Of a DNA stretch of 64,000 nucleotides, positions 26,343-57,618 are shown in pieces; the stretch's first letter is position 1, and every line of letters begins with the position of its first letter. The position numbers were made by a program, and so were the translations under genes. Under the pieces are notes generated by a model that was not told the DNA's origin, made no database searches, and saw nothing but the letters and a program-made list of their open reading frames with translations. Source of the stretch: Haliotis rubra. Its lineage: Eukaryota. The DNA lies in NCBI RefSeq assembly GCF_003918875.1, contig NW_025767525.1, forward strand, positions 124,001-188,000, in the 5' to 3' direction.

Positions 26343-28770
26343 ATGCTCCGTTTTTCTGTTTTAGTGGTATTTTGGGGGGCTGCAAATGCCGGTGTATGCC
26401 TCCCCGAGTTGTGTGCCCAGGTGAAGCAAGCTCCCCTCAACTGCGCTGGCTCTGTCATCAAGGGAGGAGGATTCTGTGGTTGTACCGATGTCTGTGCCAA
26501 GGTGTATACAACGACTGTCACTCTGTCAGACTTAATTCTTCATTCATTCACTCAAACTCACTCATCCACTCACTCACACCCACCCACTCATTCACTCACT
26601 CATACACACAGCCACACACACACACATAAACACACACTAACACACCCACGCACTCACTCTCACTCACTCACTCATCCACACAGACACGCACACACATATA
26701 TACACATACTATCACACTCATCCATTCATTCACACCCACCCACCAACGCACCCACCCACCATTCACTCACTTATCCACATAGCCACGCACACACACGATA
26801 CAGCACTCATCCATTCACTCACGCCCATTCACCCACAAACAAATTCACTCACTGACTCGCTCTAACAAAACTCCACCCACCCTACCCAACTCACTCACAC
26901 GACCTTCGCCCACCCCTTCTGTCAGTTACTCGCTCTCTGAGTCACCCATCCACCCCACTCACCCCGTTACGCTCTCTCTCTACATTCAGATGGAGGGAGA
27001 TTCGTGTTATCCCACTTACAGTCACGGTGTGATGCCCGCGGAGTTGTGTGACACAGACCTCGTTTGCCGCAAGCCCCACACGTTTGGTGCGGGCACCTGT
27101 GTCAAGGACTCGCCGAAAAGTAGGTTGATGTTGGGTCTCTGTTTCATTGTACACATGGTGTAGGGTGTCTTGTCAGAACGTGAATTGAGGTCTCGCCGAA
27201 AGTGTTTGTTAAATATCTTACGACACCTGTTCAAACAACGTGTTCTGTTATTCCTGTTGATGACCCGTGAAGATCCGGGTTAGAATTGGTCTCCAGTAAC
27301 CCATGCTAGTCAAAAGAGGCGACTAACGGGATCGGGTGGTCAGGCTTGCTGACTTGATTGACACATGTAATCGTATCCCAATTGCTTAGTTCGATGCTCA
27401 TGCTGTTGATCACTGGAGTGTCTGGTCCAGTTTCGATTATTTACAGAACGCCACCATATGTAGCTGAGTGTAGCATTAAACAACAAACAGCAATATTCCT
27501 GTTGATTCCATAAAACTCTGCTCGGCTAAATCCATTCGAAAATATATTTTTCATTTATCTCAATTCAAGCAAATAGACTGACGACAAGAAAAATGTTTAG
27601 TGGAAACTGACAAATGTGGATATGGCGTGCATGGCACCAGGCAGTGTTTTTCGAATGCACAGTATCATTTAGAAAGTGGTCAAATGTAACGTGTTATATT
27701 TGGGATTACACTTTCTCAGGAAAATTCAGATTCTTGTACGTTTGTTGGGTTAAAGTCCCATGCTTGAGTCGAACCCACACGCTCAGAGACAGGCACCTAA
27801 TCGTCAATACACAAAGCCAGCAGTCTAACCCACTCAGCCAACGCGGAAACCGTGGTGAAAGTGTAATCCCATATATAACATATGTTACAGTGTTTTTCGA
27901 GTTTGACCCATGTGAAGTGTTACCTGAAAGTATCACGTGACTTTCTAGGATCCACCAAGACTAAATGTCAACAGATGATGATGGCGTCGTTGATGACCAT
28001 GATTGTTTACGACGGCAAGTGGACGCCAACCTGTGACGCCGATGGTAACTTCACACCCATGCAGTGCGACTTCTCAGGTGAGACAGCAGTTATAGTCTGA
28101 GGCGGTGTAGGTCCTCCCCAAATGGTTCAAACTGGGTTTAAGCAGTTCATCTTCTGATGGGGCGGTGGGGTAGTCTAGTGGTTAAAGCGTTGGCTCGTCA
28201 CGAATCCCCACATGGGTACAATGAGTGAAGCCCATTTCTGGTGTTCCCCGCCGTGATATTGCTGGAATATTGCTAAAAGCGGCGTAAAACCAAACTCAGT
28301 CAGTCAGTCATCTTCTGAGGATTCAAACTATATGGTGAATCTGGATACAAATTGGCATAACCTTGAATTGATAAAGTCCATCTTTATTAGCTAAAACGTG
28401 CGGAGGTACCCGATCGATTCTGAAAATACAGTCATTTATTCTAGATATTGTGTAAGAATATGCATTTGAAACAACAGTCAGTCATCGGCAGAAAAATGCA
28501 AGATGAATTTAAGTCCAGCCTCTGACTTGGTAACATGATGTCATTGCAACTTGACCAGTTCAGTCTTTAAGCATAGAAACCTGGTCTGTTGACGACTGAC
28601 CAATGAACAGATCGGCACTGAACACTATTGATATTCATAGCAGTGATCCTCCTCAACAAGACAATAACAGTTTCACACCATGTGTTGCAGGTCACTGTTT
28701 CTGTGTGGACTCCATGGGAGTTATGCATGGAAGCAAGGTCCTTGGGAAGGTCAACTGTCCCTCTCAATAA
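26343..28770 (+). CDS. Secreted IGFBP-N-like + thyroglobulin type-1 domain protein, paralogue A (165 aa)
   Basis: Exons 26343-26501, 26990-27119, 27949-28077, 28691-28770 (intron phases 0,1,1). MLRFSVLVVFWGAANA|GVCLPELCAQVKQAPLNCAGSVIKGGGFCGCTDVCAKMEGDSCYPTYSHGVMPAELCDTDLVCRKPHTFGAGTCVKDSPKRSTKTKCQQMMMASLMTMIVYDGKWTPTCDADGNFTPMQCDFSGHCFCVDSMGVMHGSKVLGKVNCPSQ*. AATAAA at 28798-28803. Confidence 0.9.
26540..26960. repeat. CA/CACT-rich microsatellite in paralogue A intron 1
   Basis: Low-complexity tract, directly visible. Confidence 0.85.
27262..27490 (+). mobile_element. SINE family 3
   Basis: gacccgtgaagatccgggttagaattggtc start plus core and tail. Confidence 0.8.
28159..28308 (+). mobile_element. 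SINE family 1
   Basis: TSD tcatcttctga. Confidence 0.85.
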
Positions 28771-29450: not shown

Positions 29451-32400
29451 ATGCTGCGGTTTGCTGTTTTAGTGGTATTTTGGGGGGCAGCGAATGCCAT
29501 TGTTTGTGTTCCTGAGTTGTGTTCCCAGGTGAAGCAAGCTCCCCTCAACTGCGCTGGTTCTATCATCAAGGGGGGAGGATTCTGTGGCTGCTCTGATGCA
29601 TGTGCCAAGGTATGTTCTGTCTTGAATATGTCCATCGGTTGACACAACGCTTTGATGAGTGTCTTACGCGAATGGTGAATTGTTCTTAAAAGCAATATTG
29701 TAAAAGCTGTTATATACTCGCCATGTAATACTGTGTGGGTCATGATATGATAGTTTTACTGACTAGTTATAGTATGACCAGAAATTATGGAGAATTTTAG
29801 GAATATGTTTAATTAGATTTCTAGTATAATCAACCGTGACCAGCTATCAAGTGCTTGGTTTCATTCAAGAGAGACAACTCCGTTAATCCCTTTTCATGAT
29901 TTTGTGAAGAGTTATCCCCCTTTGTTTACTTGCTAGCAGACGACATTTTCAGTGATCCTCAGTATGGATGATTTAGAGAAGAGGAAGTTGATTTTAGAGT
30001 ATTATAACAAGGACATCAGATCAGCTAAAGTGATTTCAAGTAGAACAGGCATCCCTTTGTCCACTGTTTATTGTGTTTTGAAAAATATTGCAAATGGATA
30101 TGGCATTGAGTACCAGGGAGGCGCAGGTAGGCCCAGAAAATTCACTGTCGGTGACAGGAGGCGGCTTGGTATTCTTGTTTCTAAAAACAAAGGAAGGAGG
30201 TTAGAATTGAAGGAGGTTGCTAATATTCACATTAATACGTGAGTAATGAGTGAACAAAATATAGAAAATTACAATCCTTAAATTCTCAATAATTTCTGGT
30301 TGTACTGTATCATTGTATTTCTTACCCGGTTATCGCAAGACTTGAATAACAATGTCAATATGTAGTTTCGCCAAATGTTTAACCTCGTGTTGAGTACAAT
30401 CGCTTATCTAGCAGAAAGTCAAGGTGCTTCTCTTAATGTCGACATAGTTTATTTTTTTATAAGTCTAGTACTGTCTTTTTCAAGATATTTCCACATAATG
30501 GTGGAACATTTCCACATTCATTCAACTCATTTTGACCTCACATATGTTAAAACTTACTCATTCAACATATATGAAGATTATAGACTCACTCACTCTACAT
30601 TCAGGTTGCGGGAGAGGTGTGCCAGGCCACGTACATGCACGGGATAATACCTCAGGGGTCTTGTGACACGGGTTTGGTTTGCAAGAAGGACCAGATGGCT
30701 ATTTTTGGTGCGGGCACCTGTGTCAAGGACACATCCAAGAGTAAGTTGCGTGTTAGGATCTCTGTTTTATTCCACACCAATATCAAGTCAACAAAACGTG
30801 ATTTCAGACCCTGCGTCCACAGCTTCTGAAAACTTTACCATTTCATAAATTGTTTGCCATGGCGAAGCCCTGTCTGAAAGGAACTATTTCTTATAATGCA
30901 AATCAAAGGATTGATAGTTTCAAGGCTCTACAGTACAAATCGTCCGTCGAGGAAGAACACTTGTCTTCCCCGAGTACATTTCGAGAGGATAGACATACGT
31001 CGGTCGGGTTCGTTGAGGTTTGTAAGCCAACAAAATTTAATGGTGATCTTTTATGTTCGTGCCTCGAAACGCTGCGTTACAGATGAGTCTAGTCAGTGCA
31101 TCTCCCATACACTGCAGCTTCACTCTCAGGAGTCAAGCTGCCAAATCCGGTCACCCATCGAAGGACTCTCCGTGAGCACCGTTGCTTTGCGATTTGTGTC
31201 CAGGCGCTATGCCTAAGGTCACTAGACACCAGAAGCCACGCTTGTCAGGGCACGTTGATGATAGATAGCTATCTATTGGTCAGTGTAATGCTGCCTTCGG
31301 TGTAAAGCACGGCTAACAGGCTTGTCAAATGTTTCTGACAGAGGAACATTTGTGAACACCATATATATGCAGTTTGTTTGAGAATGTATTTGTATGCTAA
31401 ATGTGGATACAGTTATGTGTACCTTTGAGTTCATGTTTCTATGTTTATTGTGTAACAATGTACCGGCAATATTTCAACCAATACGACTGCCCATATAAAG
31501 TATATCGGACTAACATCATGAAGTATACTCTTCAAAAACAGACACTTGACATGTGTTTTGGAGTTTACTTACTGAATGCATACAGCTGATTCAAACATGG
31601 CATCATTGCACAGTTACAGTAAAATCATCACTTGACAAATTTCCAAAACATGATTATCCAGAAAGTGTTTGGTACAACCACAGAGGGTTATTAAAGCCAA
31701 TTAGTCAGAGTAAAATGTCAGTATCTGGTATGACCACCATGAGCATCGATAACAGCTTGGCAGCGGTGACAAATAGAAGAAAGGAGAAGCCGAATGCTGT
31801 CTTGAGGAATGTTTTGATACTCTTACTGAAGTACTGTGCGCAGTTCTTGTAGTGTCTGAGGTGGCGCATGACGCTGGCGGAAGCGTCGATCAAGAGTATC
31901 CCATAGATGTTCAATGGGTGACAAATCCGGTGATCGAGAAGGCCAAGGTAATAACTGAACATTGTTTTGCTGGAGGAAGACATGTCAAATACGTGCAGAG
32001 TGAGGTCGAGCATTGCCATGCTCCAAAGATCACGTTGATGGTGAGAACGACGTGACGTTGAAGTCGTCTTCTGGCAAAAAGTCTGGCTTTCCATAGCCAG
32101 TTGCAATTGCGCACTGTCTGGTCGGAGATTCGGAGCAGGCCAGGGATTTGGATTGTTGTGGATGATGCGGCCGTGGTGTTTCAACGAAAATGTCTTAACC
32201 GGATGGGCGATCTTGGGCGGCGGTGGTAACTCCAGGTCGACCTGACCTGGGTCTGTCATTAACACTCCCAGTATTTTTGTATCGGGTCCATAGGTTTCAG
32301 CTGGTCTGTCTGGACACGCTGAAGTGCCTAGCCACATCATGCTGCGATGTCCGTCCTTGTAACGGCCGATGGCGTTGTGTCGTTGAGCTTCTATCAGCCT

Positions 32401-35164
32401 TTTCATTCTCTTGTCGTCTATAGTGGCTTAAAGCAATGCATGCGGGGTATCACTGATGTGGCTTTTTAAAGCCTACAGTCATGGGTCGGGTAAGGTGAAA
32501 TTGGGTTTTACGTCGTGCTTGAGAATATTTCGCTCATATGACGACGTGCATGCGTGTGTATGGGTATGTGCGGCTGCTTGTACTAGCCCAGACTGAAGCT
32601 GGTTTTATAGTGCTAGCCCACTGAGATACCATGCCGCAGTGAAGCATGAATACCCCACTCAGACACATTATACTGTCACCGAACCGACCAGTCCTTGTTG
32701 TACCCATTAATGCCGAGCGCCAGGCAGGGACTAACAAGTTCCATATTTTAACGTCTTTTGGTATGACGCGGCCGGGGATCGAACCCGCGACCTTCCGCTC
32801 TCTGGGCGGACGCTCTAACCACTACACCACGGAGGCGGTTCCTACAGTCATAGGCTTCAGCTCAGTGTGATACATAATTTCATGATGCTCGTGCATTTCA
32901 TGTAGGGTGCGTTTTAGAGACTCACTACAGACATGAGTGTAACTAAACGTTTTTGTTAAACGTTTCTTTTTTCAAATATTTTGTCGTCGGCAACTATTCC
33001 CCCACATGATGGGATTCAGCATGGATTGGTTTGTTTCAAATATTTTCCTAAAATTCAAATTTGTCCTATGTCAAGTTTCTTTTTTTTTAAGAGTATAAAT
33101 CCAGTGTTGTCTTGTACCGAGTCACAAATCCTGACAATCTCATTTGATCTTCCCGTACAAACAGAGGCTACGGGTGACATAGTCTAAAACGGTGTCTCAT
33201 AGTGTTCGCATAAAAACATCGAGTGTATGAGATTTAGGTATAAACCGTCGCTGTCGAGTCATCTGTACACTGTCTTCAGTAGACGTCACTGTGCCTCATG
33301 TGATATATACCACAGATATACTCTGACGTCTTATTAACGTAGATGGGCGCTGTGGGTTCGCAAAAATTTGACTTAGCCAACAATGTCCTGTTGGCCAAGG
33401 CAGTTGTATAGGTTTTGAATATAGTATTTATTGTCCCACGTTTATGAATAATTTTGTGAAATACTGTTTTTATATGATTTATCTTATTTCATCTGTACAA
33501 CACTGTATCATGAAGTATTCTTCTCCCGTCTTCTGTGACGTCAGTGTTTGTCGTGTTAGACTAGTTTTATAGTTACACGTGAAGATCCGGGTTAGAATTG
33601 GTCTTCAATGGCCCCATGCTTGTCGTAAGAGGCGACTAACGGGATCGGGTGGTCAGGCTCGCTGACTTGCTTGACACATGTCATCGTATCCCAATTGTGT
33701 AGATCGATGCACATGCTGTTGATCACTGAATTGTCTGGTCCAGAATCAATAATTTACAGACCGCTGCCATGTAAATGGAATATTGCTAAGTGCGGCGTAA
33801 AATTAAACTCGCTCACTCAGTTTTGTAGTGTTATGTGAACGGTCACGTGACTTTCTAGGATCGACGAAGACTAAATGTGAGCAGATGAGGATGGCGTCGT
33901 TGATAACCATGGTTGTTTACGCTAGCAAGTGGACGCCAACCTGTGACGCCGATGGTAACTTCACACCTCAGCAGTGCGACTTCTCAGGTGAGACAACAGA
34001 TCTAAGCCAAGATGGTATAGGTTCTCCACAAACATACCGTTCCCTGTTTTAACATGCTGTTCACCTTCTCACTGATTCTCTGACAAGTAATACTTTAATA
34101 TTCATCCAGATCCTCCGTTAATTACTAAATATGTCTCTGTTTCAATGTGGGAGAATGCTCAGACGTAATCTAAAATGAAACCACAATATTGTCTCCCAAA
34201 TGTCAATCTAATTTCTATATATACTCATGCCAATAATGGTTGTCACCACCTTCAATTTTTTAATTGGAGAGGGGGTATGGGGTATTATTATTGGGGGTGC
34301 GGAGGGAGTGACAACCATTATTGGCATGAGTATATTATTGAACGAATATGTAAGTTTAGTTTGAGTTAGGAATATGTCCACTGGTCCTCGTCTCTTTGCG
34401 ACGATTAAAGATTTTAAGTAAATAAATAAATAAATAAAATAGATAAATAAATAAATTGAGATGACCCCCCGACTCCAAACGCTTCGGGGTACAATAAATC
34501 ATGATCGTAATGTGAAGCATTTTGAGTCGGGGATCATCGGAATTTGTTTTAAAACAAAACCTTTAACCCTCGCAAAGACACGAGGGCCTGTGAATATGAC
34601 TAGTACTAGTACTGCCTATCAGTATATTGTCAGTATAGTTTAAGATTACTGAGTTAGTAAACATCCATTGGTAGAAGCACTGGTTTTGATGTATTGTGGG
34701 GCGCTTGTCCCCTTGTATAGTCGAGAAACTTTGTGGAACGTTCAGTGCCATACTACATTAGTCGTTTGCTGTTCTAGAAGATATCACATTACACTTTAAA
34801 ACATCCAAATATAGAAACCTCCACACTACTGATTGCATTAGACAGTAATATACTCCTGATAACTAATTATTGTTAAAACACAATTCAAAAACTTTAAGTG
34901 AATCTATACAGAAACAATTTCTCACAATTGTATAATTTTATAACAATATGCTATTATGATATGTACCGCCATATTACGACGATGATGACGATTACGACGA
35001 TGACGACGATGAGTTTTCGTAATGATGCAAATAAGAGTTGTCATCCTCAACAAGGTAATAACAATTTCACAACGTTTGTTGCAGGTCACTGTTTCTGTGT
35101 GGACTCAATGGGAGTTATGCAAGGAAGCAAGGTCCTTGGGAAGGTCAACTGTCCCTCTCAATAA
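29451..35164 (+). CDS. Secreted IGFBP-N-like + thyroglobulin type-1 domain protein, paralogue B (167 aa)
   Basis: Exons 29451-29609, 30605-30740, 33859-33987, 35085-35164, with the same phases and 16 Cys as A. MLRFAVLVVFWGAANAIVCVPELC...GGGFCGCSDACAKVAGEVCQATYMHGIIPQGSCDTGLVC...GTCVKDTSKRSTKTKCEQMRM...WTPTCDADGNFTPQQCDFSGHCFCVDSMG...NCPSQ*. AATAAA follows the stop. Confidence 0.9.
29770..30307 (+). mobile_element. Internally deleted Tc1/mariner element
   Basis: About 32-bp TIRs (agtatgaccagaaattatggagaattttagga / tccttaaattctcaataatttctggttgtactg), TA flanks, HTH remnant ...TGIPLSTVYCVLK...GAGRPRK. Confidence 0.8.
31526..33095 (-). mobile_element. Degenerate Tc1 transposon carrying a nested family 2 SINE
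   Basis: TIRs tactcttcaaaaacagacacttgacat / atgtcaagtttcttttttttaagagta with TA flanks. Frameshifted transposase relic at 31705-32406. Confidence 0.8.
32490..32839 (-). mobile_element. SINE family 2 nested in the Tc1
   Basis: TSD cctacagtcat. Confidence 0.85.
33575..33820 (+). mobile_element. SINE family 3 ending just upstream of B exon 3
   Basis: Near-consensus core and tail. Confidence 0.8.
34222..34332. mobile_element. Short Tc1/mariner-type MITE
   Basis: TIR tactcatgccaataatggttgtcac with TA flanks. Confidence 0.7.
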
Positions 35165-35446: not shown

Positions 35447-36629
35447 TACTGAACAGCAAAAGAAACGCAAGTTTCGAAAAATGAAATCTCATGAAAGTAA
35501 GCGTTCATGTTTATGGAACATTCATGGTAAAGTGATGTAATGATCCAAGATGAGATGATGTCATGCAATTTGACATCCATACGAACCATTCGCACAAACA
35601 CACCAACAGTGCAGCAAAACCATAATTTTAGCACGTGCATCGACGGTTCTGGATGAAAAGCATGCATTTCACTCTGAGGTATCTTTTTATAAAGGTTTGT
35701 GTCAAAAAAACAGTTCAGTATTGACACTAGGAGATGTACACACCACACAAACGATGCCTAGACTAACGACTGAGCAGAGAGGAATGGCCAATGTAAAGTT
35801 GCACGGAGGTAGCTCCGCAACCGCTGTAGCTAGACAATTGGGCTGTCATCTTACCACTATTACACGACTTGCTCAACGTCATCAGCAAACCGGAGTTGCT
35901 GCTGATCGTCCCCGTACCGGACGGCAACGAGTGACATCTCATGCGCAAGATCGGTTCATCCGGGTCACTCATCTAAGGAACCGAACTCAAGCAGCAACAG
36001 TAACAGCAGCTTTAGTTCATGGGTCAAGGGGAGCAGTGTCCAGCGATACGATTAGGCGTCGTCTTCGGGCTGCTGGAATCCACTGCCAAAGGCCATATGT
36101 GGGGCCAATTTTGACACGCCAACAACGCCAGCGACGTTTGCAGCCCTCCCACAGCAGGGGTGTCGATGGATTATCTGGCTCAAAACAACATTAACGTTTT
36201 TCCATGGCCGTCTCTTTCCCCGTATATGGCTCCCATTGAACATTCTGGGACGAAATTGGACGGAGGATTGGTAGACAGCCACTCACACTTGCACAGTTGG
36301 AATAGAGATTGGAGTTTGAGCGGAACCAATTGCCTCAGGCATTCTTTCAGACTCTAATGAACTCAGTGAGGCCACATTGCAAGGCCTGTGTGCAAGCTCA
36401 AGGTGGCCAAACACGCGACTAAAGAGACTGTCCCTTTTACCGTTCAGGGGTATCTCCATTTGACGGACTGTGATCAATTTGAACTTATTGCAATTCAATG
36501 TCAACAGCAACTTTCAGCTGTTAAATTGACAGTGTTGTCTATAGAATAAATGATAGGACATGATTTTGGTTGTCTTCTATTCACAAACTTGACAAAAAGC
36601 GAGATTTGCGTTTCTTTTGGTGTTCAGTA
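35447..36629 (+). mobile_element. Tc1 transposon with a central deletion
   Basis: TIRs tactgaacagcaaaagaaacgcaa / ttgcgtttcttttggtgttcagta in TA repeats. ORF MPRLTTEQRG...DRPRTGRQRVTS...TIRRRLRAAG, joined to WPSLSPYMAPIEH. Confidence 0.9.
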
Positions 36630-41186: not shown

Positions 41187-41420
41187 CCGCGCAACCTTCG
41201 TGTACTTCACAGAAATAAACACATCTTTATTCCACACATATTCATACAAATTATATCGTTTTGAAAAAGTCAATTTACATTAAGCTGTATAAGCAGTAAT
41301 GTCGTGAACTTCAATATCTCTTCATGTGTTCCGATTTTGGTTCAAACTGAGGATGTTAGTCACAATCGTTTCCTCGATTCCATGCATCCAGCTGAATTCC
41401 GTTGTTCCGGATCCTGTTTT

Positions 41421-45059: not shown

Positions 45060-45585
45060 GATGAATGAATTGTGTTTTACGCCGCTTTTAGCAATATCCC
45101 AGCAATATCAGGGCTGGGGACAACAGAAATGGGCTCACACATTGTACCCATGTGGGGAATGGAACCCGGGTATTCGGCATGGTGAGCGAACGCTTTAACT
45201 CCTAGGCTACCTCACCGCCCCTCATGATTACAACTGGCCTTGAGCAACCAATACTTGGTGTAAGTGGCGACGAACGGGATCAGTTGGTGACTTGGTTGAT
45301 GCATGTCATCGTATCCTGATTGCGTACATCGTTGCTCATGATGTCAATCACTGGATTGTCTGGTCACATCGTTTACAGACAGCCGTCATGTATCTGGAAA
45401 TAAGGAATGCTGCGTGTTTCGTTAAACAACAAAGAGTGAGTGAGGATGTTTTGACGTGGCTTTTAGCAATATTCCAGCAATATCACGTCGGGGGACAACA
45501 GAAATTCACATACTGTACCCATGTGAGGAGAGGAACCCGGATTGGGGCGTGACGAGCGAGCGCATTAACCACTAGGCTAATACAC
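45060..45585. mobile_element. SINE cluster (family 1 -, family 3 +, family 1 -)
   Basis: Family matches; paralogous cluster at 53845-54280. Confidence 0.7.
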
Positions 45586-45869: not shown

Positions 45870-46487
45870 AGTTTGGTGGCAATGCCTGTCGATGTAGAGT
45901 AAGTACTGAGGTATGAAGGTCATGTAATGACCAAATGAGGACTGGTTGAAACAGTGTTCGCATAGGCTTTTGAATGACAAGGCTGTGAGTGCCTCTACCA
46001 GTGCCAATAGCTTGATTCGAACTTGGGATTAGTTTCAAAAGGTTTCGCGATTTGATCGACGTCTTTCACGGGTTCACGTGGTTTGGGATCAGCTTTTATA
46101 CAGATCGTCGTCACTAAGCTTGTTCCCCATTAAGGTCCGAGTTACAACTGTTTTTCAACCCATGGTTGTTATAAGAGACGGCTAACGGAATAACGTTTTA
46201 AGGCTTACCTACTGGTTGGTGCATGTCATCGCGTCTTATTTGCTTAGATCGCTGGTCATTTTGTTAGTCACTGGATTATCTGGTCGAAAGCTTATTTACA
46301 GGTCGCCGCAATACAAATTGAACAGTGGCGTAAAAGAGCAAGCAAACAAAGAAACAAATACACATGTTGTTGTAATAATTCTGCGAAGTTAAAACAAATA
46401 TTAAAACATTGAGATGTTAACAAAGAATTGAATCAAAGTGATAAGCCGAAAGCCTATTTTCTTCCTTGCTCTGCCTGTATCTTGCTT

Positions 46488-46494
46488 TATAAAA
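46488..46494 (+). promoter_or_regulatory. TATA box of paralogue D
   Basis: TATAAAA 42 nt before the ATG; conserved in E. Confidence 0.65.
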
Positions 46495-46689
46495 GACAAG
46501 TCGGGCACATGGTCCAGTATTTTGACACGATGATCCGTCTAGCAGCGTTCCTGGCAGCCGTCGTGACGGCGGGGGCTATTGTTTGTACCCCTGACATGTG
46601 TGATGGGGTAGAGAAGACGCCCCTCACTTGCCCGGGGTCCGTCATCGAGGGAGGGGGCTTCTGTGGCTGTACAGACACCTGTGCCAAGG

Positions 46690-46852
46690 TGAGTGTGACT
46701 GAGTGAGTTTTGTTTTACGCCGCTTTTATCAATATTTCATCAATGTCACGACGGGGGACACCAGAAATAAGCATCTCATTTTGTACCCATGTGGGGAATC
46801 GAACCCGGGTCTTCGGCGTTACGAGCAAACGCTTCAACCACTGGGCTACCCA
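46690..46852 (-). mobile_element. SINE family 1 abutting the D exon 1 donor
   Basis: The reverse-strand tail begins at intron position +3; paralogous to 55030-55168. Confidence 0.8.
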
Positions 46853-46949
46853 AGTGAGGTGTGTTTAACTCGAGGTGACGTTTAGGTGTGTTTTTTATCA
46901 CGAATTCAAACCATGACACTGAATAATATTGTACTTTCGGTGGTAAAAA

Positions 46950-47165
46950 CTCAGCTCTCAGCAATATTCCAGCTATATGGGGCCATTCTGTAAATAATCG
47001 AGTCTGGACCAGACAATCCAGGGATCAACAGCTTGAGCATCGATCTACGCAACATATGAAGACATGTGTCAACCAAGTCAGTGAGCCTGAGCACCTGATC
47101 GTTAGTCGCCGCTCACGACAAGCATGGGTTGCTGAAGAACAATTCTAACCCAGATCTTCACTGGT
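46950..47165 (-). mobile_element. SINE family 3 in D intron 1
   Basis: Reverse family 3; paralogous to 55340-55740. Confidence 0.75.
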
Positions 47166-48639
47166 CACAACAGAACTTGTGCTGCTTTAATGATGAATGA
47201 ATTGTCAATAACAACAACTATTCTGATGCCACTCATGATATACATGTTTCCTGATCTAGGTAGAAGGAGACTTATGCCAGAAGTCCTCCCTGTTGACGGG
47301 GCCGCTCCCCGCACGACCAGTGTGACACGGGTCTCGTGTGCGACTCCGTCGGTAGTGCCTTCCTGGATCTGTTTGGGAAAGGCAAATGCGTGAAAGACAC
47401 ACAAAGCAAACGTTTTGTCTTTGACGGTAAGCAAAATTCAAATATGAACTTTTTTTTTTCTAGTCGTCGTATCACAAGATGCATGAGTGAGTAAGTGACT
47501 ATGGTGGTATGCCCATTTTAGCAATATTCCAGCAAATATCACTATTGGGGGGCACCGGAAATGTGCTCCACACATTGCACCCGTATAGGGGATCAGGATC
47601 CAGTTCTTTTTTAACCACTATACTGGCCCCCCTGACCCCAAATTACATGTGAAAGGTTTACGGTGTGAAAGACGTGCGTTCATGTACAGATGCACGTTGT
47701 AAGGACTGTAAGAAATATCGATTAAAATGTTTTCCAATTTCTTTATGAATTTCTAATTTTGCTAGGTTTTGGAACTCACGTTATAACTACATATACATGT
47801 ATATGACTGCGGTCCGTAAATAATCGGGATTGACTTAGCAATCCAGTGATTTCTTTTGTAATAACGGTGGTCAGTGTTAAGAGAGAGTGTTTTTTGTAAT
47901 TTGTAATTTGTAAAATCACATTGATTAAGTGATAATTATTATGGGTCGCAATGTTTAAAGTTTTGAGTGTGGGTTTTATGGTCAAATCTCGCATCATATA
48001 TGTTCAATGGCAATAGTATTTTTAGCGGCACGCCTTTTTGATAGCGCTTCAGAGTTGCCTCCCTTGGCAATCTTGTTTATTTACGGCTTTCATCATGCCG
48101 TGGAGTTTTCCACCGATTTCGACGGATTTCTATAAAGTTCTGAGTGGATAATGATACAGCCTAGCTTTGCTAGAATGCTCGAGAACTGTGAGCTATATAA
48201 AGGCTGGTTGTTGTGTTGTGACACGGACTTTTCACATGACTGGATTTATACACATCTGTCTCCCATCGTTGTTCAACATTTCAAGATTGACCCTGCTTGC
48301 CTGCTGCCATTATCATCTACCTTCAATCAGTATATCTGCTCTCACTGTAAATGTCAAGACTCTGGCGAGTTAATGTTTTAATTTTGTGACCCAATATTTT
48401 AGATTTTTGACTCAATTGCATTTACTAGATATATGTATTGTCATTCATTGTAATTTGCTCATTGTTTGCTCAATATATTATTGAATATTTTAGACTTGTT
48501 TGTGTTCTATTTTGCTGGTTCAAAGGGGACTTTTGAACCTTTTGTCACGGTAATTTATTAACCGTAACATCAGTGGATGTCAACTTCTATATTATGAGGA
48601 ACACAACGTTTTGGAGTTATATGCTTACTCCTTCATCCT

Positions 48640-49125
48640 TTTGGGTTCGATTACTTTTCTGTGCTCGACTATACCTTTGTGTTGGACTACTTTTTGTGCT
48701 CGACTATACCTTTGTGTTTGACTACTTTTTGTGCTCGACTACCTTTGTATTGGACTACTTTTCTGTGCTCGACTATACACTTCTGTTGGACTACTTTCTG
48801 TGCTCGACTATACCTTTGTGTTGGACTACTTTTCTGTGCTCGACTATACCCTACTGTTCGACTACTTTTCTGTGTTCGACTATACCTTTGTGTTGGACTA
48901 CTTTTTGTGCTCGACTATACATTGTGTTGGACTACTTTTCTGTGCTCGACTACCTTTGTGTTGGACTACTTTTCTGTGCTCGACTTCTGTTTGTGTTGGA
49001 CTACTTTTCAGTGCTCGACTTCTGTTTGTGTTGGACTACTTTTTCCTGTGCTCGACTACCTTTGTGTGGACTACTTTTTGTGTTTGACTACTTTTTTGGT
49101 GGACTACTTTTTGTGCTGGACTATT
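48640..49125. repeat. ~18/36-bp minisatellite immediately upstream of D exon 3
   Basis: Unit gtgctcgactatacctttgtgttggactacttttct. Confidence 0.9.
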
Positions 49126-49431
49126 TTTTAAACTATCACCTGACGTTTTAGGATCTGAGACCAAATGCCAGCACTTGGCGTACTCGCAGATGATGTCCAT
49201 GCAATATGGGACAACCCAGTGGCAAGCAGACTGTGATACTGATGGTAACTTCCGACCCATGCAGTGCGACATCGGGGGTAAGACAACAGTGACAGATGGT
49301 ATAGTTTGTTATCAAACAGCTGTGGCCAAGCACGCAGTTCATCCTGCCATTGTGGCCTTCACGCGATAACTAACATTTTATTATAATTCCTGTTCCATCA
49401 TCAATTACTGGATTTAATCTTTTGTCTGAAA

Positions 49432-49595
49432 TGAGTGAGTGAGTTTAGTTTTAAGCCGCTTTTAGCAATATTCCAGCAATATCACGTCGGGGGATGCCAG
49501 AAATGAGATTCACACATTGCACCCATGTAGGGATTCGAACCCGGGTCTTCGCCGTGACGAGCAAACGCTTTAATCACTAGGCTACCCAACCGCCC
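49432..49595 (-). mobile_element. SINE family 1, present in duplicate copy 2 only
   Basis: TSD ttgtctgaaat; empty site at ~39585 in copy 1. Confidence 0.85.
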
Positions 49596-49748
49596 TTGTC
49601 TGAAATAAAAGTATTTACACATGTCACCATGATTCCGAAATACATCCGTAGGATATAAGATATTTATTTTCAAGATGGTTGTAATTAAAGCAACATGAAG
49701 AAGAGGCTTACATGTCATAATGAATCTTAAAATAAGGAAAATACCAAT

Positions 49749-51391
49749 TGTGGACGTAACACAGACACCACTATTAACGTAACACAGACAACATTGTGGA
49801 CGTAACACAGACACTACTGTTCACGTAACACAGACACCATTGTGGACGTAACAAAGACAACACTGCGGACGTAACACACACATCATTGTTGACGTAACAG
49901 ACAATATTATGTACGTAACACATACAACATTGTGGACGTAACACAGACACCACTGTTAACGTAACACAGACAACATTGTGGACGTAACACAGACACCACT
50001 GTCCACGTAACACAGACAACATTGTAGACGTAACACAGACAACACTGTTGTAGGCGTAACAAAGACACCACTGCTGGCGTAACACAGACAACACTGTTGC
50101 CGTAACACAGACACCACTGAGGACGTTACACAGACGACACTGTTACCGTAACACAGACCACTGTTGACGTAACACAGACACCACTGTGACGTAACACAGA
50201 CAACACTGTTGACGTAAAACAGACACCACTGTTGACGTAACACAGACAACATTGTAGACGTAACACAGACAACATTGTGGTAGGCGTAATGAAGACACCA
50301 CTGCTGGCGTAACACAGACAACACTGTTGATGTAACACAGACACCAATGTTGACGTAACACAGACACCACTGTTGACGTAACACAGACACCACTGTTGAC
50401 GTAACACAGACACCACTTTTGACGTAACACAGACACCACTGTTGACGTAACACAGACACCACTGTTGACGTAACACAGACACCACTGTTGACGTAACACA
50501 GACACCACTGTTGACGTAACACAGACAACACTGTTGACGTAACACAGACACCACTGTTGACGTAACACAGACACCACTGTTGACGTAACAAAGACACCAC
50601 TGTTGACGTAACACAGACACCACTGTTGACGTAACACAGACACAACTGTTGACGTAAAACAGACACCACTGTTGACGTAACACAGACACCACTGTTGACG
50701 TAACACAGACACCACTGTTGACGTAACACAGACACCACTGTTGACGTAACACAGACACCACTGTTGACGTAACACAGACACCACTGTTGACGTAACACAG
50801 ACACCACTGTTGACGTAACACAGACACCACTGTTGACGTAAAACAGACACCACTGCTGGCGTAACACAGACAACACTGTTGATGTAACACAGACACCAAT
50901 GTTGACGTAACACAGACACCACTGTTGACGTAACAAAGACACCACTGTTGACGTAACACAGACACCACTTTGACGTAACACAGACACCACTGTTGACGTA
51001 AAACAGACACCACTGTTGACGTAACACAGACACCACTGTTGACGTAACACAGACACCACTGTTGACGTAACACAGACAACACTGTTGACGTAACACAGAC
51101 ACCACTGTTGACGTAACACAGACACCACTGTTGACGTAACACAGACACCACTGTTGACGTAACACAGACACCACTGTTGACGTAACACAGACACCACTGT
51201 TGACGTAACACAGACACCACTGTTGACGTAACACAGACACCACTGTTGACGTAACACAGACAACACTGTTGACGTCACACAGACACCACTGTTGACGTAA
51301 CACAGACACCACTGTTGACGTAACACAGACAACACTGTTGACGTAACACAGACACCACTGTTGACGTAACACAGACACCACTGTTGACGTA
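49749..51391. repeat. 23-bp minisatellite (~70 copies) in D intron 3
   Basis: Same unit as 39720-40623, more homogeneous. Confidence 0.95.
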
Positions 51392-52180
51392 ATATAGGGC
51401 GTAACAACACGGTTATACTTTATGTCTGGAATTAGAAATTCTTTGATACAGGCCTTTTAAACTAACATTCTAGATTGCTTTTGATTAACAAAAGTATTGA
51501 ATTGGAGTATAATATCATAATGATTTATCACTATATCATCATAAAATTCAACACACACCACATCCCGGACACAATTTCCATAGCAAAATCAGAGAAAGCA
51601 CCTGAGAAACCAATACTGTGGTGATGTACGTAGACACCGGGTGTCAAACTAACCGTGTATTGGGCACTAATGTGTTGTGCTTAAGAGATCAATTACTGAT
51701 GCAAGAAGTGTTCATTTTATTGGTAATGTGACCAGTTCTTATGTGTATGTGATGTATTTTTATGATATCTGTACTCAACAAAGAATCATCTATGAAAAAT
51801 GAAATCAGCAGCAGCAGCAGCATCATCAATGATAGTAACAATTTCACAACTTGTGTTTCAGGTCTCTGTTTCTGTGTGAACTCCACCACTGGGGACATAC
51901 AAACCGGCAAGATCCATGGCCATGTTGACTGTCCTCCAGACTAGCCGCGCAACCTTCGTGTACTTCACAGAAATAAACACATCTTTATTCCACACATATT
52001 CATACAAACTATATCGTTTTGAAAAAGTCAATTTACATTAAGCTGTATAAGCAGTAATGTCGTGAACTTCAATATCTCTTCATGTGTTCCGATTTTGGTT
52101 CGAACTGAGGATGTGTTAGTAACAATCGTTTCCTCGATTCCATGCATCCAGCTGAATTCCGTTGTTCCGGATCCTGCTTC

Positions 52181-52333
52181 GTAGAGAAACCCAGCAATAC
52201 GGGAGCTCACTTTACAATGGGACGTTACTCTGGAGAGAAACCCAGCAATGCGGGAGCTCACTTTACAAAGGGACGTTACTCTGGAGAGAAACCCAGGAAT
52301 ACGGGAGTTCACTTGACAAAGGGACGTTACTCT
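52181..52333. repeat. 51-bp minisatellite, 3 copies, downstream of D
   Basis: Same unit and flanks as 41421-43715. Confidence 0.9.
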
Positions 52334-52560
52334 ATGTTCTCTTCTGCTTCATCCGGGTTGTTCAATGACAAGTACTCTACATGAACATATGGCTGCTTCG
52401 TGAACGAAGCCAATGTGATATAATGCTGTCTTTTTGTAGAAAAATACATAATAACAATAGCGTTAGTTTGGATTGACCTGCTGTTTCATGTTCCCAAACA
52501 ACGTGGAAATGAGCTATGCATGAAATCTTCTTTGAAAAAGACAGTCCTCCAAGCAAAACT

Positions 52561-52727
52561 ACTGACTGAGTTTGGTTTTACGCCGCTTTTAGCAATATTC
52601 CAGCAACATCACGGCGGGGGACACCAGAAATGGGCTCCACATATTGTACCCCTGTGGGGATTCGAACCTTTGGATCTTCGGCGTGACGAGCCAACGTTTT
52701 AACCACTCGGCTACCCCACCGCCCCCC
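52561..52727 (-). mobile_element. SINE family 1, present in duplicate copy 2 only
   Basis: TSD ~caaaact; empty site ccaagcaaaactaagaaaatc at ~43931 in copy 1. Confidence 0.85.
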
Positions 52728-53844
52728 AAACAAAACTAAGAAAATCTCAATCTGGATCGCGTCATATGGACAGTGGTGTGTCATTTAGTGTGATATGCAG
52801 TCTCATTTCGCGCCATGTGGAATTTATAATGGGGCAATGAACAAGTTGCCAAAAGTGTAATAATCTCATTTTAGAATTTTTGAGAAATATATTGGCGTTC
52901 TACCGCCCACGTGCGATCACATATATCCTTGTCATATTGTGCTGTTATAGTATTATTGTTAAACTGTTGCATCCTGTGACTGCGTTAGGCCCATACTCAG
53001 AAATATTGATAAATGCGCCCTAAAACAACAGTCGCTCTGCCACGCCTGCTTCATTGCTTACCGTCGCGTTTCTTTCTTTCGACAGTATATTTTGGTTGAC
53101 TAGGTCATGTTTTTATACTTCGACCAATACGTTTATCTACGACCGTGTGGTCACTGCATGGGCATGTGCGTAGAAGCTAGTCACATAGCTGTGTACCCTT
53201 AGCACACAAGCACATTGTTGCTCACTCAGGGTCAGTTTTAGAAGTGGACACATGCATTTGTTGCGTGATACAGCGAATATGCAATGTACTGACAGAGACG
53301 TGTATAATGACCAGCTGTCAGAGTTCTAGCATGTTTGGCTTATCTAATCAGTTTACGCGTAGAATACTGTAGGCCACTAAAACGAAACCTTCTAGCTGCA
53401 AATATTCTGACGTTTTAGCGACTTTGTTAGAAATCTAGTTTACAGAATTAAATATTTATTCACTGTTTTCAGTATGTAACATAATGTGTTTGGTCTGTAA
53501 CATGAATGACTCAATTTGTTCAAGTTGTCTCCAGCGTCTCATGAAGAGGGACAGTTTTCTAAACGAACTCTGGCCCGTCGTTTGTTCTATACTACAAGTC
53601 TGAGAAGACACGGTTTTGCCATGCAATGTAGTCAAAATATCGTTATGTACTGGAAACGGTGATATCTACAGCAATTCGTTGTGTAAAGTTTCGGCCATTA
53701 GTAGGTGAAATCATACTGTCGCAAAGGCTCTACTGGTATTAATTCGAAAGACATCGCTTCGTATACTCACAATTTGATATTGCGTGCAATTCACATTGTT
53801 GTATATCATTACTTATCACATCCAAGAAGATCAGGATTACAGTG

Positions 53845-54220
53845 GATGAATGAATTGTGTTTTACGCCGCTTTTAGCAATATTCCAGCAATATCAGGGCT
53901 GGGGACAACAGAGATGGGCTTCACACATTGTACCCATGTGGGGAATAGAACCCGGGTTTTTGGCATGGTGAGCGAACGCTTTAACTCCTAGGCTACCCCA
54001 CCGCCCCTCATGATTACAACTGGCCTTGAGCAACCAATACTTGGTGTAAGTGGCGACGAACGGGATCAGTTGGTGACTTGGTTGATGCATGTCATCGTAT
54101 CCTGATTGGGTACATCGTTGCTCATGATGTCAGTCACTGGATTGTCTGGTCACATCGTTTACAGACAGCCGTCATGTACCTGGAAATTAGGAATGCTGCG
54201 TGTTTCGTTAAACAACAAAG
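53845..54220. mobile_element. SINE family 1 (-) plus family 3 (+)
   Basis: Duplicate of 45060-45430. Confidence 0.75.
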
Positions 54221-54827
54221 AGTGAGTGAGGTTTTAAGTCGCTTTCAGCAATATTCCAGCAATATTCCAGCAATATCATGGCAATAACAGTTTTCACATA
54301 TGCTTACATTTTTAATGACAAGGCTGAGAGTCCTTTGACCAGTGCCAGTAACTTCATTCGAACTTGGGGATAAGTTTCAAAAGGTTCCGTGGTTTGATCG
54401 GCGTCTTTCACGAGTTCACATGGCTTGGGATCAGCTTTTGTACAGATCGTCGTCATTACGCTTCTTCCCCGTTAAGGTCCGAGTTACAACTGTTTTTCAA
54501 CCCATGGTTGTTATAAGAGACGACTAACGGGATCCCGTTTTAAGACTTACCTACTTGGTTGGTGCATGTCATCGCGTCTTAGATCGCTGGTCATTGTGTC
54601 AATCACTGGATTATCTGGCCCAAAGCCTATGTACAGGCCGCAGCCATATAGCTGGACAAATTCTATTCCTGGCGTAAAAGAGCAATCAAAGAAACAAATA
54701 CTCCATGTTGTTGTAAAAATTCTGCGACGTCAAAGCAAATGTTAAAACGTCGAGGAGTTAACAAAGAGATTATCAATCTGATAAGCCGAAAGCCTATTTT
54801 CTGCACAGCTCTGCCTGTATCTTGCTT

Positions 54828-54834
54828 TATAAAA
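54828..54834 (+). promoter_or_regulatory. TATA box of paralogue E
   Basis: TATAAAA 41 nt before the ATG; same context as in D. Confidence 0.65.
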
Positions 54835-54868
54835 GACAGGTCGGGCACATGGTCCAGTATTTGACACG

Positions 54869-57618
54869 ATGATCCGTCTAGCAGCGTTCCTGGCAGCCGT
54901 CGTGACGGCGGGGGCTATTGTTTGTACCCCTGACATGTGTGATGGGGTAGAGAAGACGCCCCTCACTTGCCCGGGGTCCGTCATCGAGGGAGGGGGCTTC
55001 TGTGGCTGTACAGACACCTGTGCCAAGGTGAGTGTGACTGAGTGAGTTTTGTTTTACGCCACTTTTAGCAATATTTCATCAATATCACGACGGGGGACAC
55101 CAGAAATGGGCTTCACACATTGTACCCATGTCTTCGGCGTGACAAACGAACACTTCATCCCACCGCCCCCTGTGCCAAGGTATGTTGAGTGAGTGAGTGA
55201 GGTGTGTTTAAGGCTGCTTTATTAGAAACTCAAATGATACCGAATAATATTGTATATTGTGTGGTAAAAATAACCAGATTAAACTTATTTTTTCAGTGAC
55301 GACAACGAGTTTGGGTGTTGGTTTTGTTGGTGGTGGTGGTGGTGTTGCCGTGAATAATCTTGTCTGCACCAGACAATCCAGTGATCAACGACATGAGCTT
55401 CGATCTACGCTAGTGGGATACAATGACGTGTCAACCAAGTCAGCGAGCGGATACGATGACACGTGTCAACCAAGCGGGGCGGTTAGGGTAGCCTAATGGT
55501 TAAAGCGTTCGCTCGTCACGCTGAAGACCCGGGTTCGATTCCCCACATGGGTACAATGTGTGAAGCCCATTTGTGGTGTCCCCCGCCGTGATATTGCTGG
55601 AACATTTTGCTAAAACCGGCGTAAAACTAAACTCATTCACTCAACCAAGCCAACGAGCCTGCCCACCCGATCCCTGTAGTCGCCTCTTACGAGAAGCATG
55701 GGTTACTGAAGATCAATTCTAACCCAGATCTTCACGGGTCACAACAGAACTTGTGCTGCTTTAATGATGAATGAATTGTCAATAACAACAACTATTCTGA
55801 TGCCACTCATGATATACATGTTTCCTGATCTAGGTAGAAGGAGACTTATGCCAGAAGTCCTCCCTGTTGACGGGGCCGCTCCCCCACGACCAGTGTGACA
55901 CGGGTCTCGTGTGCGACTCCGTCGGCAGTGCCTTCCTGGATTTTTTCGGTAAAGGCAAATGCGTGAAAGACACACAAAGCAAGCGTTTTCTCTTAGACGG
56001 TAAGCAAATGTCAATATACTCTTTATTGTTATCTGATGAATTAAGACAGTTAAGAGAGTACATAGCATTGTGGCCATAGTCATCGTATCAGAGGAGGCAT
56101 GACATTACATGCTTGAGTGAGTGAGTGACAATGGTTTGAGTACATAGCATTGTGGCCTTAGTCATCGTATCACAGGAGGCATGACATTACATGTTTGAGT
56201 GAGTGAGTGACAATGGTTTGAGTACATAGCATTGTGGCCATAGTCATCGTATCACAGGAGGCATGACATTACATGTTTGAGTGAGTGAGTGACAATGGTT
56301 TGAGTACATAGCATTGTGGCCTTAGTCATCGTATCACAGGAGGCATGACATTACATGTTTGAGTGAATGAGTGACAATGGTTTGAGTACATAGCATTGTG
56401 GCCTTAGTCATCGTATCACAGGAGGCATGACATTACATGTGACATTGAGTGAGTGAGTGACAATGGTTTGAGTACATAGCATTGTGGCCATAGTCATCGT
56501 ATCACAGGAGGCATGACATTACGTGCTTGAGTGACATTACGTGTTTGTGAGTGACAGTGGTTTGAGTACACCTCTTTAACACTGCGTTTGCAATGTCCAG
56601 TTTGATCGACAAACATCAAGTTTGCTGGTCTGTTACACAAACTGTTAATAAAATGCTAACATTCCCAGATATTACCGCGTGTGAGAAGATGAAGATCGCG
56701 AAGGCGTCCCAGCCGACATACTCGGACAACTGGACGCCAAAGTGTGACGCCGACGGGGCCTTCGAGCCAATGCAGTGCGACCTAGCAGGTAAGGTTGAAC
56801 GACGCCATCATTCGTTACCACTCGCCCCTTTCCGTAACTGCCAAGAAGAAGCTATTCGGCTTGTTCCGGAATAACACGAGTTGGCCACGAATGAAACGCC
56901 ATGTGACATCATTCCTGCAAATAGGTTTTTCTGTTATTCCACGACTGATCAACTTAATTGGGTAGAAAATATAAAAGGTGAAGTTGGCAAAGATGTTTTC
57001 CACTTTCTTGAAATAACGAGTCATAAAAGCCTAGTCGTCTAATAACCTACACGGAGCTTAAGCCTTTGAAGTTCATGCTAGCCCGCTAGCCCAAGACTTC
57101 TAAGTTCCGCTGACCACAAATCCTCACTGACTAGAAACATTTGAGGGCTAGAGCCAGCATTCAATGTTTTCATTTTGTTACAAACGGGAGCTGAATGGAA
57201 TTGACAGAAAATGTAAACTTTCAAGGAAGCACAGACTCTGAGAACTTAATAACTATTTAGACATGTCTTGAAAACGCCAAATTAATTTATCATTTTATGT
57301 GAGTGAGTGAGTGAGTAAGGCTTTAAGCCGCTTTTAGCAATATTCCAGCAATATCACGGCGGAGGACACCAGAAATGGGCTTCACGCATTGTACCCATGT
57401 GGGGAATCGAACCCAGGTCTTAAGCGTGATGAGCGAACGCTTTAACCATTAGAGCTTTAACCATTACCACACACTGACAAAACTCACAGGGTATACATTG
57501 GCTATTGCGACAGTAATTTGGCTTGCTTGATGTTCCAGGTCGTTGCTTCTGCGTCGATTCTGCGGGTCAGATTCAAGGTAGCAGAGTTCAAGGAAAGGTT
57601 ACCTGTCCAAGCACTTGA
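54869..57618 (+). CDS. Secreted IGFBP-N-like + thyroglobulin type-1 domain protein, paralogue E (174 aa)
   Basis: Exons 54869-55027, 55834-55999, 56669-56788, 57539-57618. MIRLAAFLAAVVTAGAIVCTPDMCDGVEKTPLTCPGSVIEGGGFCGCTDTCAKVEGDLCQKSSLLTGPLPHDQCDTGLVCDSVGSAFLDFFGKGKCVKDTQSKRFLLDDITACEKMKIAKASQPTYSDNWTPKCDADGAFEPMQCDLAGRCFCVDSAGQIQGSRVQGKVTCPST*. AATAAA at 57644-57649. Confidence 0.9.
55030..55168 (-). mobile_element. SINE family 1 inserted in the E exon 1 splice donor
   Basis: 13-bp TSD cctgtgccaaggt at 55017-55029 and 55169-55181. Confidence 0.85.
55476..55642 (+). mobile_element. SINE family 1 nested in a reverse family 3 SINE (55340-55740)
   Basis: TSD tcaaccaagc; absent from the D paralogue. 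Confidence 0.85.
56056..56570. repeat. 82-bp minisatellite (~6 copies) in E intron 2
   Basis: Unit gagtacatagcattgtggccatagtcatcgtatcacaggaggcatgacattacatgtttgagtgagtgagtgacaatggttt. Confidence 0.95.
57299..57460 (-). mobile_element. SINE family 1 in E intron 3
   Basis: Reverse family 1 body. Confidence 0.8.

Follow-up and report, generated by a model that had tools for sequence, protein, structure and literature searches.

The window analysed here is a 64,000-nucleotide (nt) stretch of the Haliotis rubra genome (contig NW_025767525.1, positions 124,001 to 188,000 of the forward strand). On its + strand, at window positions 26343–57618, it carries an array of five tandem paralogous genes of four exons each. 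The genes had been proposed in an earlier note on this DNA, and all were found when the DNA was read around each exon and then spliced. The introns are GT-AG in all five genes, with phases 0/1/1, and exon 1 is always 159 nt long. Genes 1, 2, 3 and 5 are intact (four of the five) and give products of 165, 167, 168 and 174 amino acids (aa), respectively; gene 4 is frameshifted. The product of each intact gene is a secreted protein, about 150 residues long when mature, with two disulfide-rich modules joined by a hinge. The N-terminal module has 10 cysteines (Cys) and the fold of the IGFBP N-terminal domain (IB), and is followed at the C-terminus by a canonical 6-Cys thyroglobulin type-1 (TY) domain. 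This anatomy, with the fold and the family assignment described below, is held with high confidence.

Gene 1 illustrates the exon plan. Exon 1 (26343–26501, + strand as are all exons of the array; 159 nt) encodes the predicted signal peptide and the first half of the IB-like domain, ends in CAK at a phase-0 donor, and is identical to the corresponding RefSeq protein P0001. Exon 2 (26990–27119) completes the IB-like domain and continues through the hinge to K-R, where a phase-1 donor splits the Arg codon. The first half of TY (the first three Cys, W-x3-C and QC) is found in exon 3 (27949–28077), which gives a Pfam TY score of 23.9 bits alone, and the second half (CFCVD to the last C), with the stop codon, in exon 4 (28691–28770). 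The exons of gene 2 are situated at 29451–29609 (159 nt), 30605–30740, 33859–33987 and 35085–35164, those of gene 3 at 37559–37717 (159 nt), 38556–38691, 39308–39436 and 41104–41186, and those of gene 5 at 54869–55027 (159 nt), 55834–55999 (166 nt), 56669–56788 (Pfam TY 26.6 bits for the exon alone) and 57539–57618; the stop codon lies in exon 4 in each case. The signal peptide, of 16 aa, is predicted from a hydrophobic N-terminus that ends A-x-A, and the AlphaFold model places a helix over residues 2–15. The Cys patterns quoted in the earlier note, C-x4-C-x9-C-x10-CGC-x3-CAK-x2-G[DE]-x-C, CDT[GD]LxC, GxCVKD, W-x3-C, QC and CFCV[DN], are present in the spliced models. Its statement that every gene encodes a 10-Cys and a 6-Cys domain holds for genes 1, 2, 3 and 5 and fails for gene 4, which has an extra G in exon 2.

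The gene 1 model is letter-for-letter identical to the 165 aa RefSeq protein annotated as "nidogen-2-like [Haliotis rubra]" (P0001). A query with gene 1 exon 1, read as a 170 aa open frame that enters intron 1, also matched P0001 at 100% identity. The exon reads on as a 170 aa open reading frame because a C/T-rich repeat fills the start of intron 1 (26502–26900). The gene 3 model equals RefSeq P0004 counted from the second in-frame ATG of the latter; the RefSeq start is an in-frame ATG 16 codons upstream of the gene 3 model start. At the position of gene 2 the NCBI annotation has a 167 aa gene, and exon 1 of gene 2 lies within it. In the GenBank assembly GCA_003918875.1 the array is on contig QXJH01000800.1 (478 kb), where the window begins near base 124,016. 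A tblastn search with all exon peptides returned exactly these 20 exons, and no extra copies, in the window. Exon joining in the abalone genes is predicted from the gene models and the RefSeq models, and transcript evidence comes from an oyster relative. There, the gene has four introns in the genome, but its 269 aa open reading frame is uninterrupted in two 0.9-kilobase contigs that were put together from public sequencing data. Thus IB and TY are joined in mRNA in the oyster.

The C-terminal domain, with six Cys and the motif CFCV[DN], is a canonical type-1 TY domain, in agreement with the original description of the second Cys pattern. Pfam Thyroglobulin_1 (PF00086) gives 33–44 bits on the full proteins (cut-off 20.6), and single exons score above or near the cut-off. 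It shows no special closeness to the IGFBP subtype. When 11 family members are combined in a profile and searched against the PDB, thyroglobulin, saxiphilin and the p41 invariant-chain fragment (65 residues, E-value = 3e-9) come first, and the next matches are the C-domains of IGFBP-5, -4, -3, -6, -2 and -1 and Trop2/EpCAM. With Foldseek, the TY part of the structural model matches p41/CD74 at 34% identity with a root mean square deviation (rmsd) of 3.0, and testican-3 and equistatin are matched as well.

The N-terminal domain displays the motif F-CGC-[TSV]-D and 10 Cys, and thus differs from the GCGCC motif and 12 Cys (10 in IGFBP-6) of IGFBP1-6. Pfam searches with single exons gave no match for the IB halves and only the TY halves scored; therefore the full-length RefSeq proteins were scanned instead. 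All seven proteins scanned match Pfam IGFBP (PF00219) at 16–26 bits, under the gathering cut-off of 28 (E-value = 1e-5 to 2e-2). Gene 1 (P0001) scores 20.4 bits and gene 3 (P0004) 21.1 bits, both under the cut-off. The match spans profile positions 5–55 of 55 in six of the seven. In precomputed Pfam assignments, PF00219 is given to the family members of a chiton and of Pinctada and to one metagenome member. A 39-sequence N-domain profile was also searched against the PDB, but was rejected as stand-alone evidence, as the E-values are about 1–3 and IGFBP-5, -4 and -3 are mixed with colipase and a designed peptide.

Structural models were obtained with AlphaFold2 (AF2) for the whole protein (predicted local distance difference test score, pLDDT, of 69.6) and for the N-domain only, from a 39-sequence alignment (pLDDT 70.7). 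The whole-protein model, compared with Swiss-Prot models by Foldseek, shows full-length IGFBP-2 and IGFBP-5 at the top and scorpion venom protein 302 over residues 1–93. For the N-domain model, the best Foldseek matches in the PDB are IGFBP-4, SIBD-1, IGFBP-7, AmFPI-1, IGFBP-3 and the HtrA1 N-domain. The E-values are only about 1e-2, and the template modelling (TM) scores are mostly 0.5–0.66, with about 0.4 for AmFPI-1 and HtrA1. The best Swiss-Prot models are the CRIM1 N-terminal IGFBP module, venom protein 302 (TM 0.65), IGFBPL1, HTRA1, CCN and IGFBP-1 to -5. These top matches are all IB domains or IB-related. A scan of 48,161 PDB chains that is independent of Foldseek gives SIBD-1 at rank 1 (Z = 6.2, rmsd 2.5, 64 of 66 residues), the IGFBP-4 N-domain at rank 2 (Z = 5.0), IGFBP-3 at rank 3 (Z = 4.4) and the HtrA1 N-domain at rank 5. 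AmFPI-1, a fungal protease inhibitor, is among the structural matches, but the match is weak (Z = 3.6, rmsd 6.0). The IB fold is accepted despite the modest Z scores because the IB matches rank first and span the whole domain; as a reading of predicted models, it is established with moderate confidence. The first domain had been described as IGFBP-N-like, and the ranking of IB domains by the AF2 model bears this out, although the Pfam IGFBP scores are below cut-off. The differences from IGFBP1-6 that had been listed with it (CGC-x for GCGCC, 10 Cys, a very short linker and an intron in the N-domain) are real.

The hinge, from the last Cys of IB to the first Cys of TY, is 12–17 residues long in the abalone genes. 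An Arg in the hinge is common to all 11 sequences of the family alignment, and in most family members it is found within KR or RR. Variants are TR in oyster and scallop and ER in Solemya, and some proteins of a sister type (type B, described below) are without any. Intron 2 interrupts the hinge Arg codon in genes 1–3, and model confidence drops at the hinge in both AF2 models. Judged from its sequence, the dibasic site in this flexible hinge may represent a candidate convertase cleavage site.

Word-based and exhaustive sequence searches, plus cluster look-ups, show that the abalone genes are part of an old IB-TY family that extends at the least to molluscs, a brachiopod, a bryozoan and a priapulid, and whose members are annotated but unstudied. 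Members of the abalone type (type A) have 10 Cys, the motif CGC-T-D-x-CAK and one to three TY domains. They are found in other Haliotis species, Gigantopelta and Batillaria, in bivalves (Crassostrea, Argopecten, Pecten, Mizuhopecten, Pinctada, Solemya, Potamilus, Sinanodonta, Tegillarca), in the chiton Liolophura, the brachiopod Lingula, the bryozoan Watersipora and the priapulid Priapulus. Their names in RefSeq follow no common scheme and include "nidogen-2-like", "saxiphilin-like", "venom protein 302-like", "equistatin" and "uncharacterized". As to whether the family had been characterised before, the databases do hold it as RefSeq models, with some bivalve members auto-named "IGFBP 2" or "IGFBP 4", but no paper on a protostome IB+TY family was found in the accessible literature.

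Abalone, oyster and Lingula have an identical exon plan, and Priapulus agrees with it over the first three exons. When proteins were mapped onto the fetched loci, exon 1 of the C. gigas gene was also 159 nt, and oyster, Lingula and Priapulus all displayed an intron of phase 0 immediately 3′ of CAK and two of phase 1, one within the hinge and the other two codons ahead of the TY CxC. The second TY repeat of the oyster protein has the same internal phase-1 intron. In the RefSeq model of the Priapulus caudatus gene (KQ715074.1), exons 1–3 have the family phases and the last exon (15112–15230) is without the CxCV half of TY; the true exon 4 was probably missed by the annotation.

In the sister type, type B, the N-domain has 12 Cys with the CGCC motif and is followed by two to four TY-like repeats that carry a CxCARD motif. 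This type is found in Gigantopelta, Pomacea, Haliotis, several bivalves, the centipede Strigamia and the crinoid Antedon; the Strigamia entry, of 146 aa and annotated with TY, is a putative member as regards its N-domain. Types A and B are homologous over the signal peptide, the IB domain, the hinge and the first TY (hhalign probability 99.9). In Gigantopelta and Antedon the type B introns are at nearly the type A places, with the N-domain intron in phase 1 and one nt later, and the TY intron in phase 2. By a reading of the layout, the type B Cys arrangement appears to match that of vertebrate IGFBP N-domains. Pfam IGFBP gave no match at E-value ≤ 0.01 on 12 type B proteins despite CGCC, and amfpi-1 matches five of these 12. 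Therefore the Pfam IGFBP model is a poor judge of invertebrate IB domains. The family is thus wider than the lophotrochozoan lineage first proposed, as type A is found in a priapulid and the sister type in molluscs, a centipede and a crinoid.

Gene 4 is a composite. Exon 1 (46530–46688, 159 nt) is 100% identical in DNA to exon 1 of gene 5. Exon 2 (47260–47426) has 167 nt compared with 166 nt in gene 5, with a single extra G at about 47311. The frame as assembled is shifted after residue ~70 and then meets stops, thus the 10-Cys and 6-Cys domains are not encoded as one product; gene 4 is either a pseudogene or affected by an indel in the assembly. Exon 3 (49152–49277), which has an open frame when read alone, and exon 4 (51862–51944) are gene-3-like, with 75% and 95% DNA identity, respectively. 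A self-comparison of the window shows 88–93% identity between the 5′ part of gene 4 (45950–47441) and gene 5 (54286–56014), and 83–91% identity between the 3′ part (49128–52333) and gene 3 (39284–41573). DNA 3′ of gene 3 (43565–45483) and DNA 3′ of gene 4 (52183–54265) share about 95% identity. Exons 1–2 of gene 4 and its upstream DNA are thus gene-5-like, and exons 3–4, intron 3 and the downstream DNA are gene-3-like. The likeness to gene 3 begins only about 24 nt upstream of exon 3, and exon 3 is only 75% identical between the two genes, yet the intron directly downstream is 90% identical. Because its 5′ and 3′ parts match different genes, gene 4 is a recombinant of a gene-5-like and a gene-3-like copy. 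Local duplication and unequal recombination enlarged the array.

The intact paralogues share 45–79% pairwise protein identity. Pairwise ratios of nonsynonymous to synonymous substitution rates (dN/dS) are 0.17–0.56 over both domains, which indicates that the coding sequences are under purifying, though not tight, selection. Positive selection among the paralogues was rejected at the level of gene pairs, as every pairwise dN/dS is below 1. Orthologues of the gene-1/2 type and of gene 5 share one scaffold in H. cracherodii and in H. rufescens; therefore the split between the gene-1/2 type and gene 5 is older than these species.

Other elements in the window are largely repeats. Downstream of gene 3 is a 51 base pair (bp) minisatellite with 45 copies and 93% matches (41423–43715), and a short remnant of this array is found downstream of gene 4 (~52028–52384). 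The genome annotation places a 245 aa single-exon gene inside the 51-bp array (~41952–42689), which is most likely a spurious open reading frame in repeat DNA. A 23-bp minisatellite is present in intron 3 of gene 3 (39721–40623, 39.5 copies) and in intron 3 of gene 4 (49749–51392, 71.5 copies), and has nearly doubled since the gene 3/gene 4 duplication. Intron 2 carries an array of 69 bp × 6.3 in gene 3 (38818–39253), 35 bp × 14 in gene 4 (48640–49124) and 82 bp × 5.8 in gene 5 (56056–56534). In intron 2 of gene 2, a 233 aa open reading frame on the − strand (31708–32406) gives no Pfam match. Remnants of Tc1/mariner-type transposases are found between genes 2 and 3 (35697–36191, + strand; HTH_Tnp_Tc3_2, 33 bits) and near the window end (62821–63749, − strand; DDE_3, 45 bits, plus a helix-turn-helix match). 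A short interspersed element has many copies, e.g. at 32646–32870, 46710–46868, 53857–53991 and 57818–58105; its translation repeats motifs such as GTPE, and in genes 4 and 5 a copy immediately follows the donor of exon 1. A C/T-rich low-complexity array at 5449–8559 shows THSLTHS-like repeats in several frames and a GC skew down to −0.83. The two runs of N in the window (7733–7862 and 8232–8361) are within it, and the repeat at the start of gene 1 intron 1 is of the same kind.

With respect to function, the abalone proteins are most likely soluble extracellular binding proteins. A small ligand would be held between the IB and TY modules, as IGFBPs hold insulin-like growth factor (IGF), and the best candidate ligands would be molluscan insulin-related peptides. 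Cleavage of a convertase type at the dibasic hinge may separate the modules, so that the ligand would be released or its binding retuned. In IGFBPs, the N- and C-domains clamp IGF cooperatively, much of the linker is dispensable, and proteolysis of the linker releases IGF (PMC3356058). An IGFBP-like binder is favoured because the same two folds that clamp IGF stay paired in this family, with a conserved, putatively cleavable hinge. As a whole, anatomy plus mechanism, this explanation is given a probability of roughly 0.55, a figure that is a compromise. The binding of insulin-related peptides, drawn from analogy with IGFBPs, is tentative when taken by itself, with the odds leaning against it.

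Several points weigh against an IGFBP-like binder. The hinge KR is less than the complete R-x-K/R-R site of furin, and TR, ER or AR takes its place in several members. The TY sequence is nearer to thyroglobulin, saxiphilin and p41 than to IGFBP C-domains, and the group with saxiphilin and p41 includes known protease inhibitors. Defence or inhibitor families more typically expand in local tandem arrays than hormone carriers do. The N-domain is modelled by AlphaFold with only moderate confidence, and the 39-sequence N-domain profile reaches IGFBP-5, -4 and -3 in the PDB at E-values of only about 2–3, with the Cys in register. In alignment with the 12-Cys type B, the N-domain is without the third Cys and the second Cys of the CC pair. 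The loop that holds the IGF-contact Leu in IGFBP-4 and -5 is about half as long in the abalone N-domain (alignments compared with PMC3356058). No binding, expression or processing data for any family member were found in the literature searched, nor did a search by the RefSeq name of the oyster orthologue, "equistatin", bring up anything relevant on its expression.

The IB+TY pairing could have arisen by exon shuffling independently of chordate IGFBPs, in which case the architecture is convergent and not a sign of orthology; this is judged only a little short of an even chance. One phase-1 intron precedes the TY unit and another splits it, and the oyster TY duplicates cleanly with its internal intron, which is a mobile-module pattern. 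In vertebrate IGFBPs a single exon encodes the N-domain, whereas in abalone it is interrupted by an intron. In addition, the TY is not specifically closest to IGFBP TY domains, and no chordate protein, chordate IGFBPs included, was recovered with the combined family profile; that search needs shared 5-residue words, so the blank says little. Convergence has to account, however, for the homology of types A and B over both domains and for the 12-Cys CGCC sister type, which is found not only in molluscs and a centipede but also in a deuterostome, the crinoid. From this distribution the IB+TY pairing probably predates the protostome-deuterostome split. That the abalone cluster is the protostome side of a bilaterian-ancestral IB+TY family from which chordate IGFBPs descend is, as a specific proposal, doubtful. 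If it is true, chordates would not have invented IGFBP-type carriers that bind insulin-related peptides and release them through proteolysis of the hinge, and IB+TY proteins would be candidate substrates of invertebrate pappalysins, for which no target is known at present (a question raised in PMC11925022).

Thyropin-type inhibition, the main rival, offers another function for the same anatomy. TY would be wedged into the active site of a papain-like cysteine protease, as in equistatin, the p41 invariant chain, saxiphilin and testican, the IB-like module would act as a second inhibitory or targeting module, and the tandem expansion would represent diversification against host or pathogen proteases. 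The rank of thyroglobulin, saxiphilin and p41 ahead of IGFBP C-domains in the TY profile search, and the Foldseek matches of TY to p41/CD74, testican-3 and equistatin, are consistent with such a role, as are the amfpi-1 matches among type B proteins and the presence of AmFPI-1 among the structural matches of the N-domain, although the latter match is the weak one noted above. An inhibitor or defence family would also suit the duplication in tandem and the moderate relaxation of constraint (dN/dS up to 0.56), and a related TY protein in an octopus salivary gland proteome was interpreted as an inhibitor (PMC7693380). However, no sequence signature separates inhibitory from non-inhibitory TY domains, hence the TY likeness predicts nothing specific. 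Typical thyropins are TY-only or multi-TY, and inhibition does not require strict pairing with IB over more than 500 million years or a conserved hinge. Inhibition of this type is considered less likely than not, though only slightly less likely than the binding of insulin-related peptides.

An immune, shell-matrix or other extracellular role, unrelated to insulin peptides or proteases, is improbable. Examples would be an opsonin or pattern-binding protein like the arthropod single-IB proteins (the spider haemocyte protein SIBD-1 is the best structural match of the N-domain), or a perlustrin-like nacre protein freed from its precursor at KR, since such cleavage would leave an IB fragment of about 80 residues, perlustrin reportedly having 84; the lineage-specific expansion in Haliotis would fit either. 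The family is also present, however, in shell-less animals, e.g. the priapulid, and the shell-matrix role suggested at first has no support in the H. laevigata nacre/prismatic proteome paper, where "thyroglobulin" is absent from the main text and the listed perlustrin and perlustrin-like entries are annotated with the IGFBP-type domain only (PMC6003135). Identity with perlustrin, a single-IB-domain protein, was rejected, as all five genes carry TY (a comparison made via annotation); that a KR-cleaved IB fragment might resemble perlustrin is a weak possibility.

Invertebrate insulin papers call classical IB+TY IGFBPs absent outside chordates and weigh IB-only or IB-Kazal-Ig proteins in their place (PMC8156652, PMC7866140, PMC11925022). 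An oyster survey reports only an IGFBP7-like gene and no definite evidence for traditional IGFBP1-6 in invertebrates (PMC8156652), and a shrimp survey and a 2025 pappalysin paper say much the same (PMC7866140; PMC11925022). The searched literature thus agrees with the assertion, made at the outset, that protostome IGFBP-like proteins are IB-only or IB-Kazal-Ig. Two proteins already described from abalone were considered and rejected as products of these genes: "IGFBP-5" is a 136 aa IB-only protein with XCGCCXXC (PMC7465962), and "IGFBP7" is of the IB-Kazal-Ig type (PMC7555818). The abalone cluster, the wider family and the sister type show that the IB+TY pairing is old and widespread. This gives concrete candidate carriers or antagonists of molluscan insulin-related peptides, which matter for growth breeding in abalone and oyster, and makes the origin of IGFBPs testable. 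If the proteins are protease inhibitors instead, the cluster is an ordinary expanded inhibitor family.

Compared with chordate IGFBP1-6, the abalone proteins are alike in being secreted and in having an IB-fold domain followed by a 6-Cys TY domain with a CWCV-type motif (CFCV in abalone). Both have four coding exons with TY over the last two and a protease-accessible inter-domain region, and IGFBP-2 and IGFBP-5 are the best Foldseek matches of the whole abalone model. They are unlike in the abalone CGC-T/S/V instead of GCGCC and in 10 Cys instead of 12 (IGFBP-6 also has 10, but the missing Cys pair is not the same). A long unstructured linker domain is replaced by the short abalone hinge, a phase-0 intron interrupts the N-domain, the IGF-contact leucine loop is much shorter, and Pfam IGFBP scores fall below cut-off. 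Single IB-domain proteins (SIBD-1, venom protein 302, perlustrin and abalone "IGFBP-5") are likewise small, secreted and of invertebrate origin, and SIBD-1 and venom protein 302 are best structural matches, but these proteins contain no TY domain and most keep CGCC. Thyropins (equistatin, the p41 fragment, saxiphilin TY, testican) share the canonical type-1 TY domain and are the closest sequence class of the abalone C-domain; the RefSeq auto-names of family members include "equistatin", "saxiphilin-like" and "nidogen-2-like". They have no IB domain, however, and inhibition by the abalone proteins is at most predicted. Type B differs from the abalone proteins in CGCC with two extra Cys, in its CxCARD repeats and in shifted intron phases. 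The cluster is best filed within the IGFBP superfamily, and not as a proven IGFBP orthologue.

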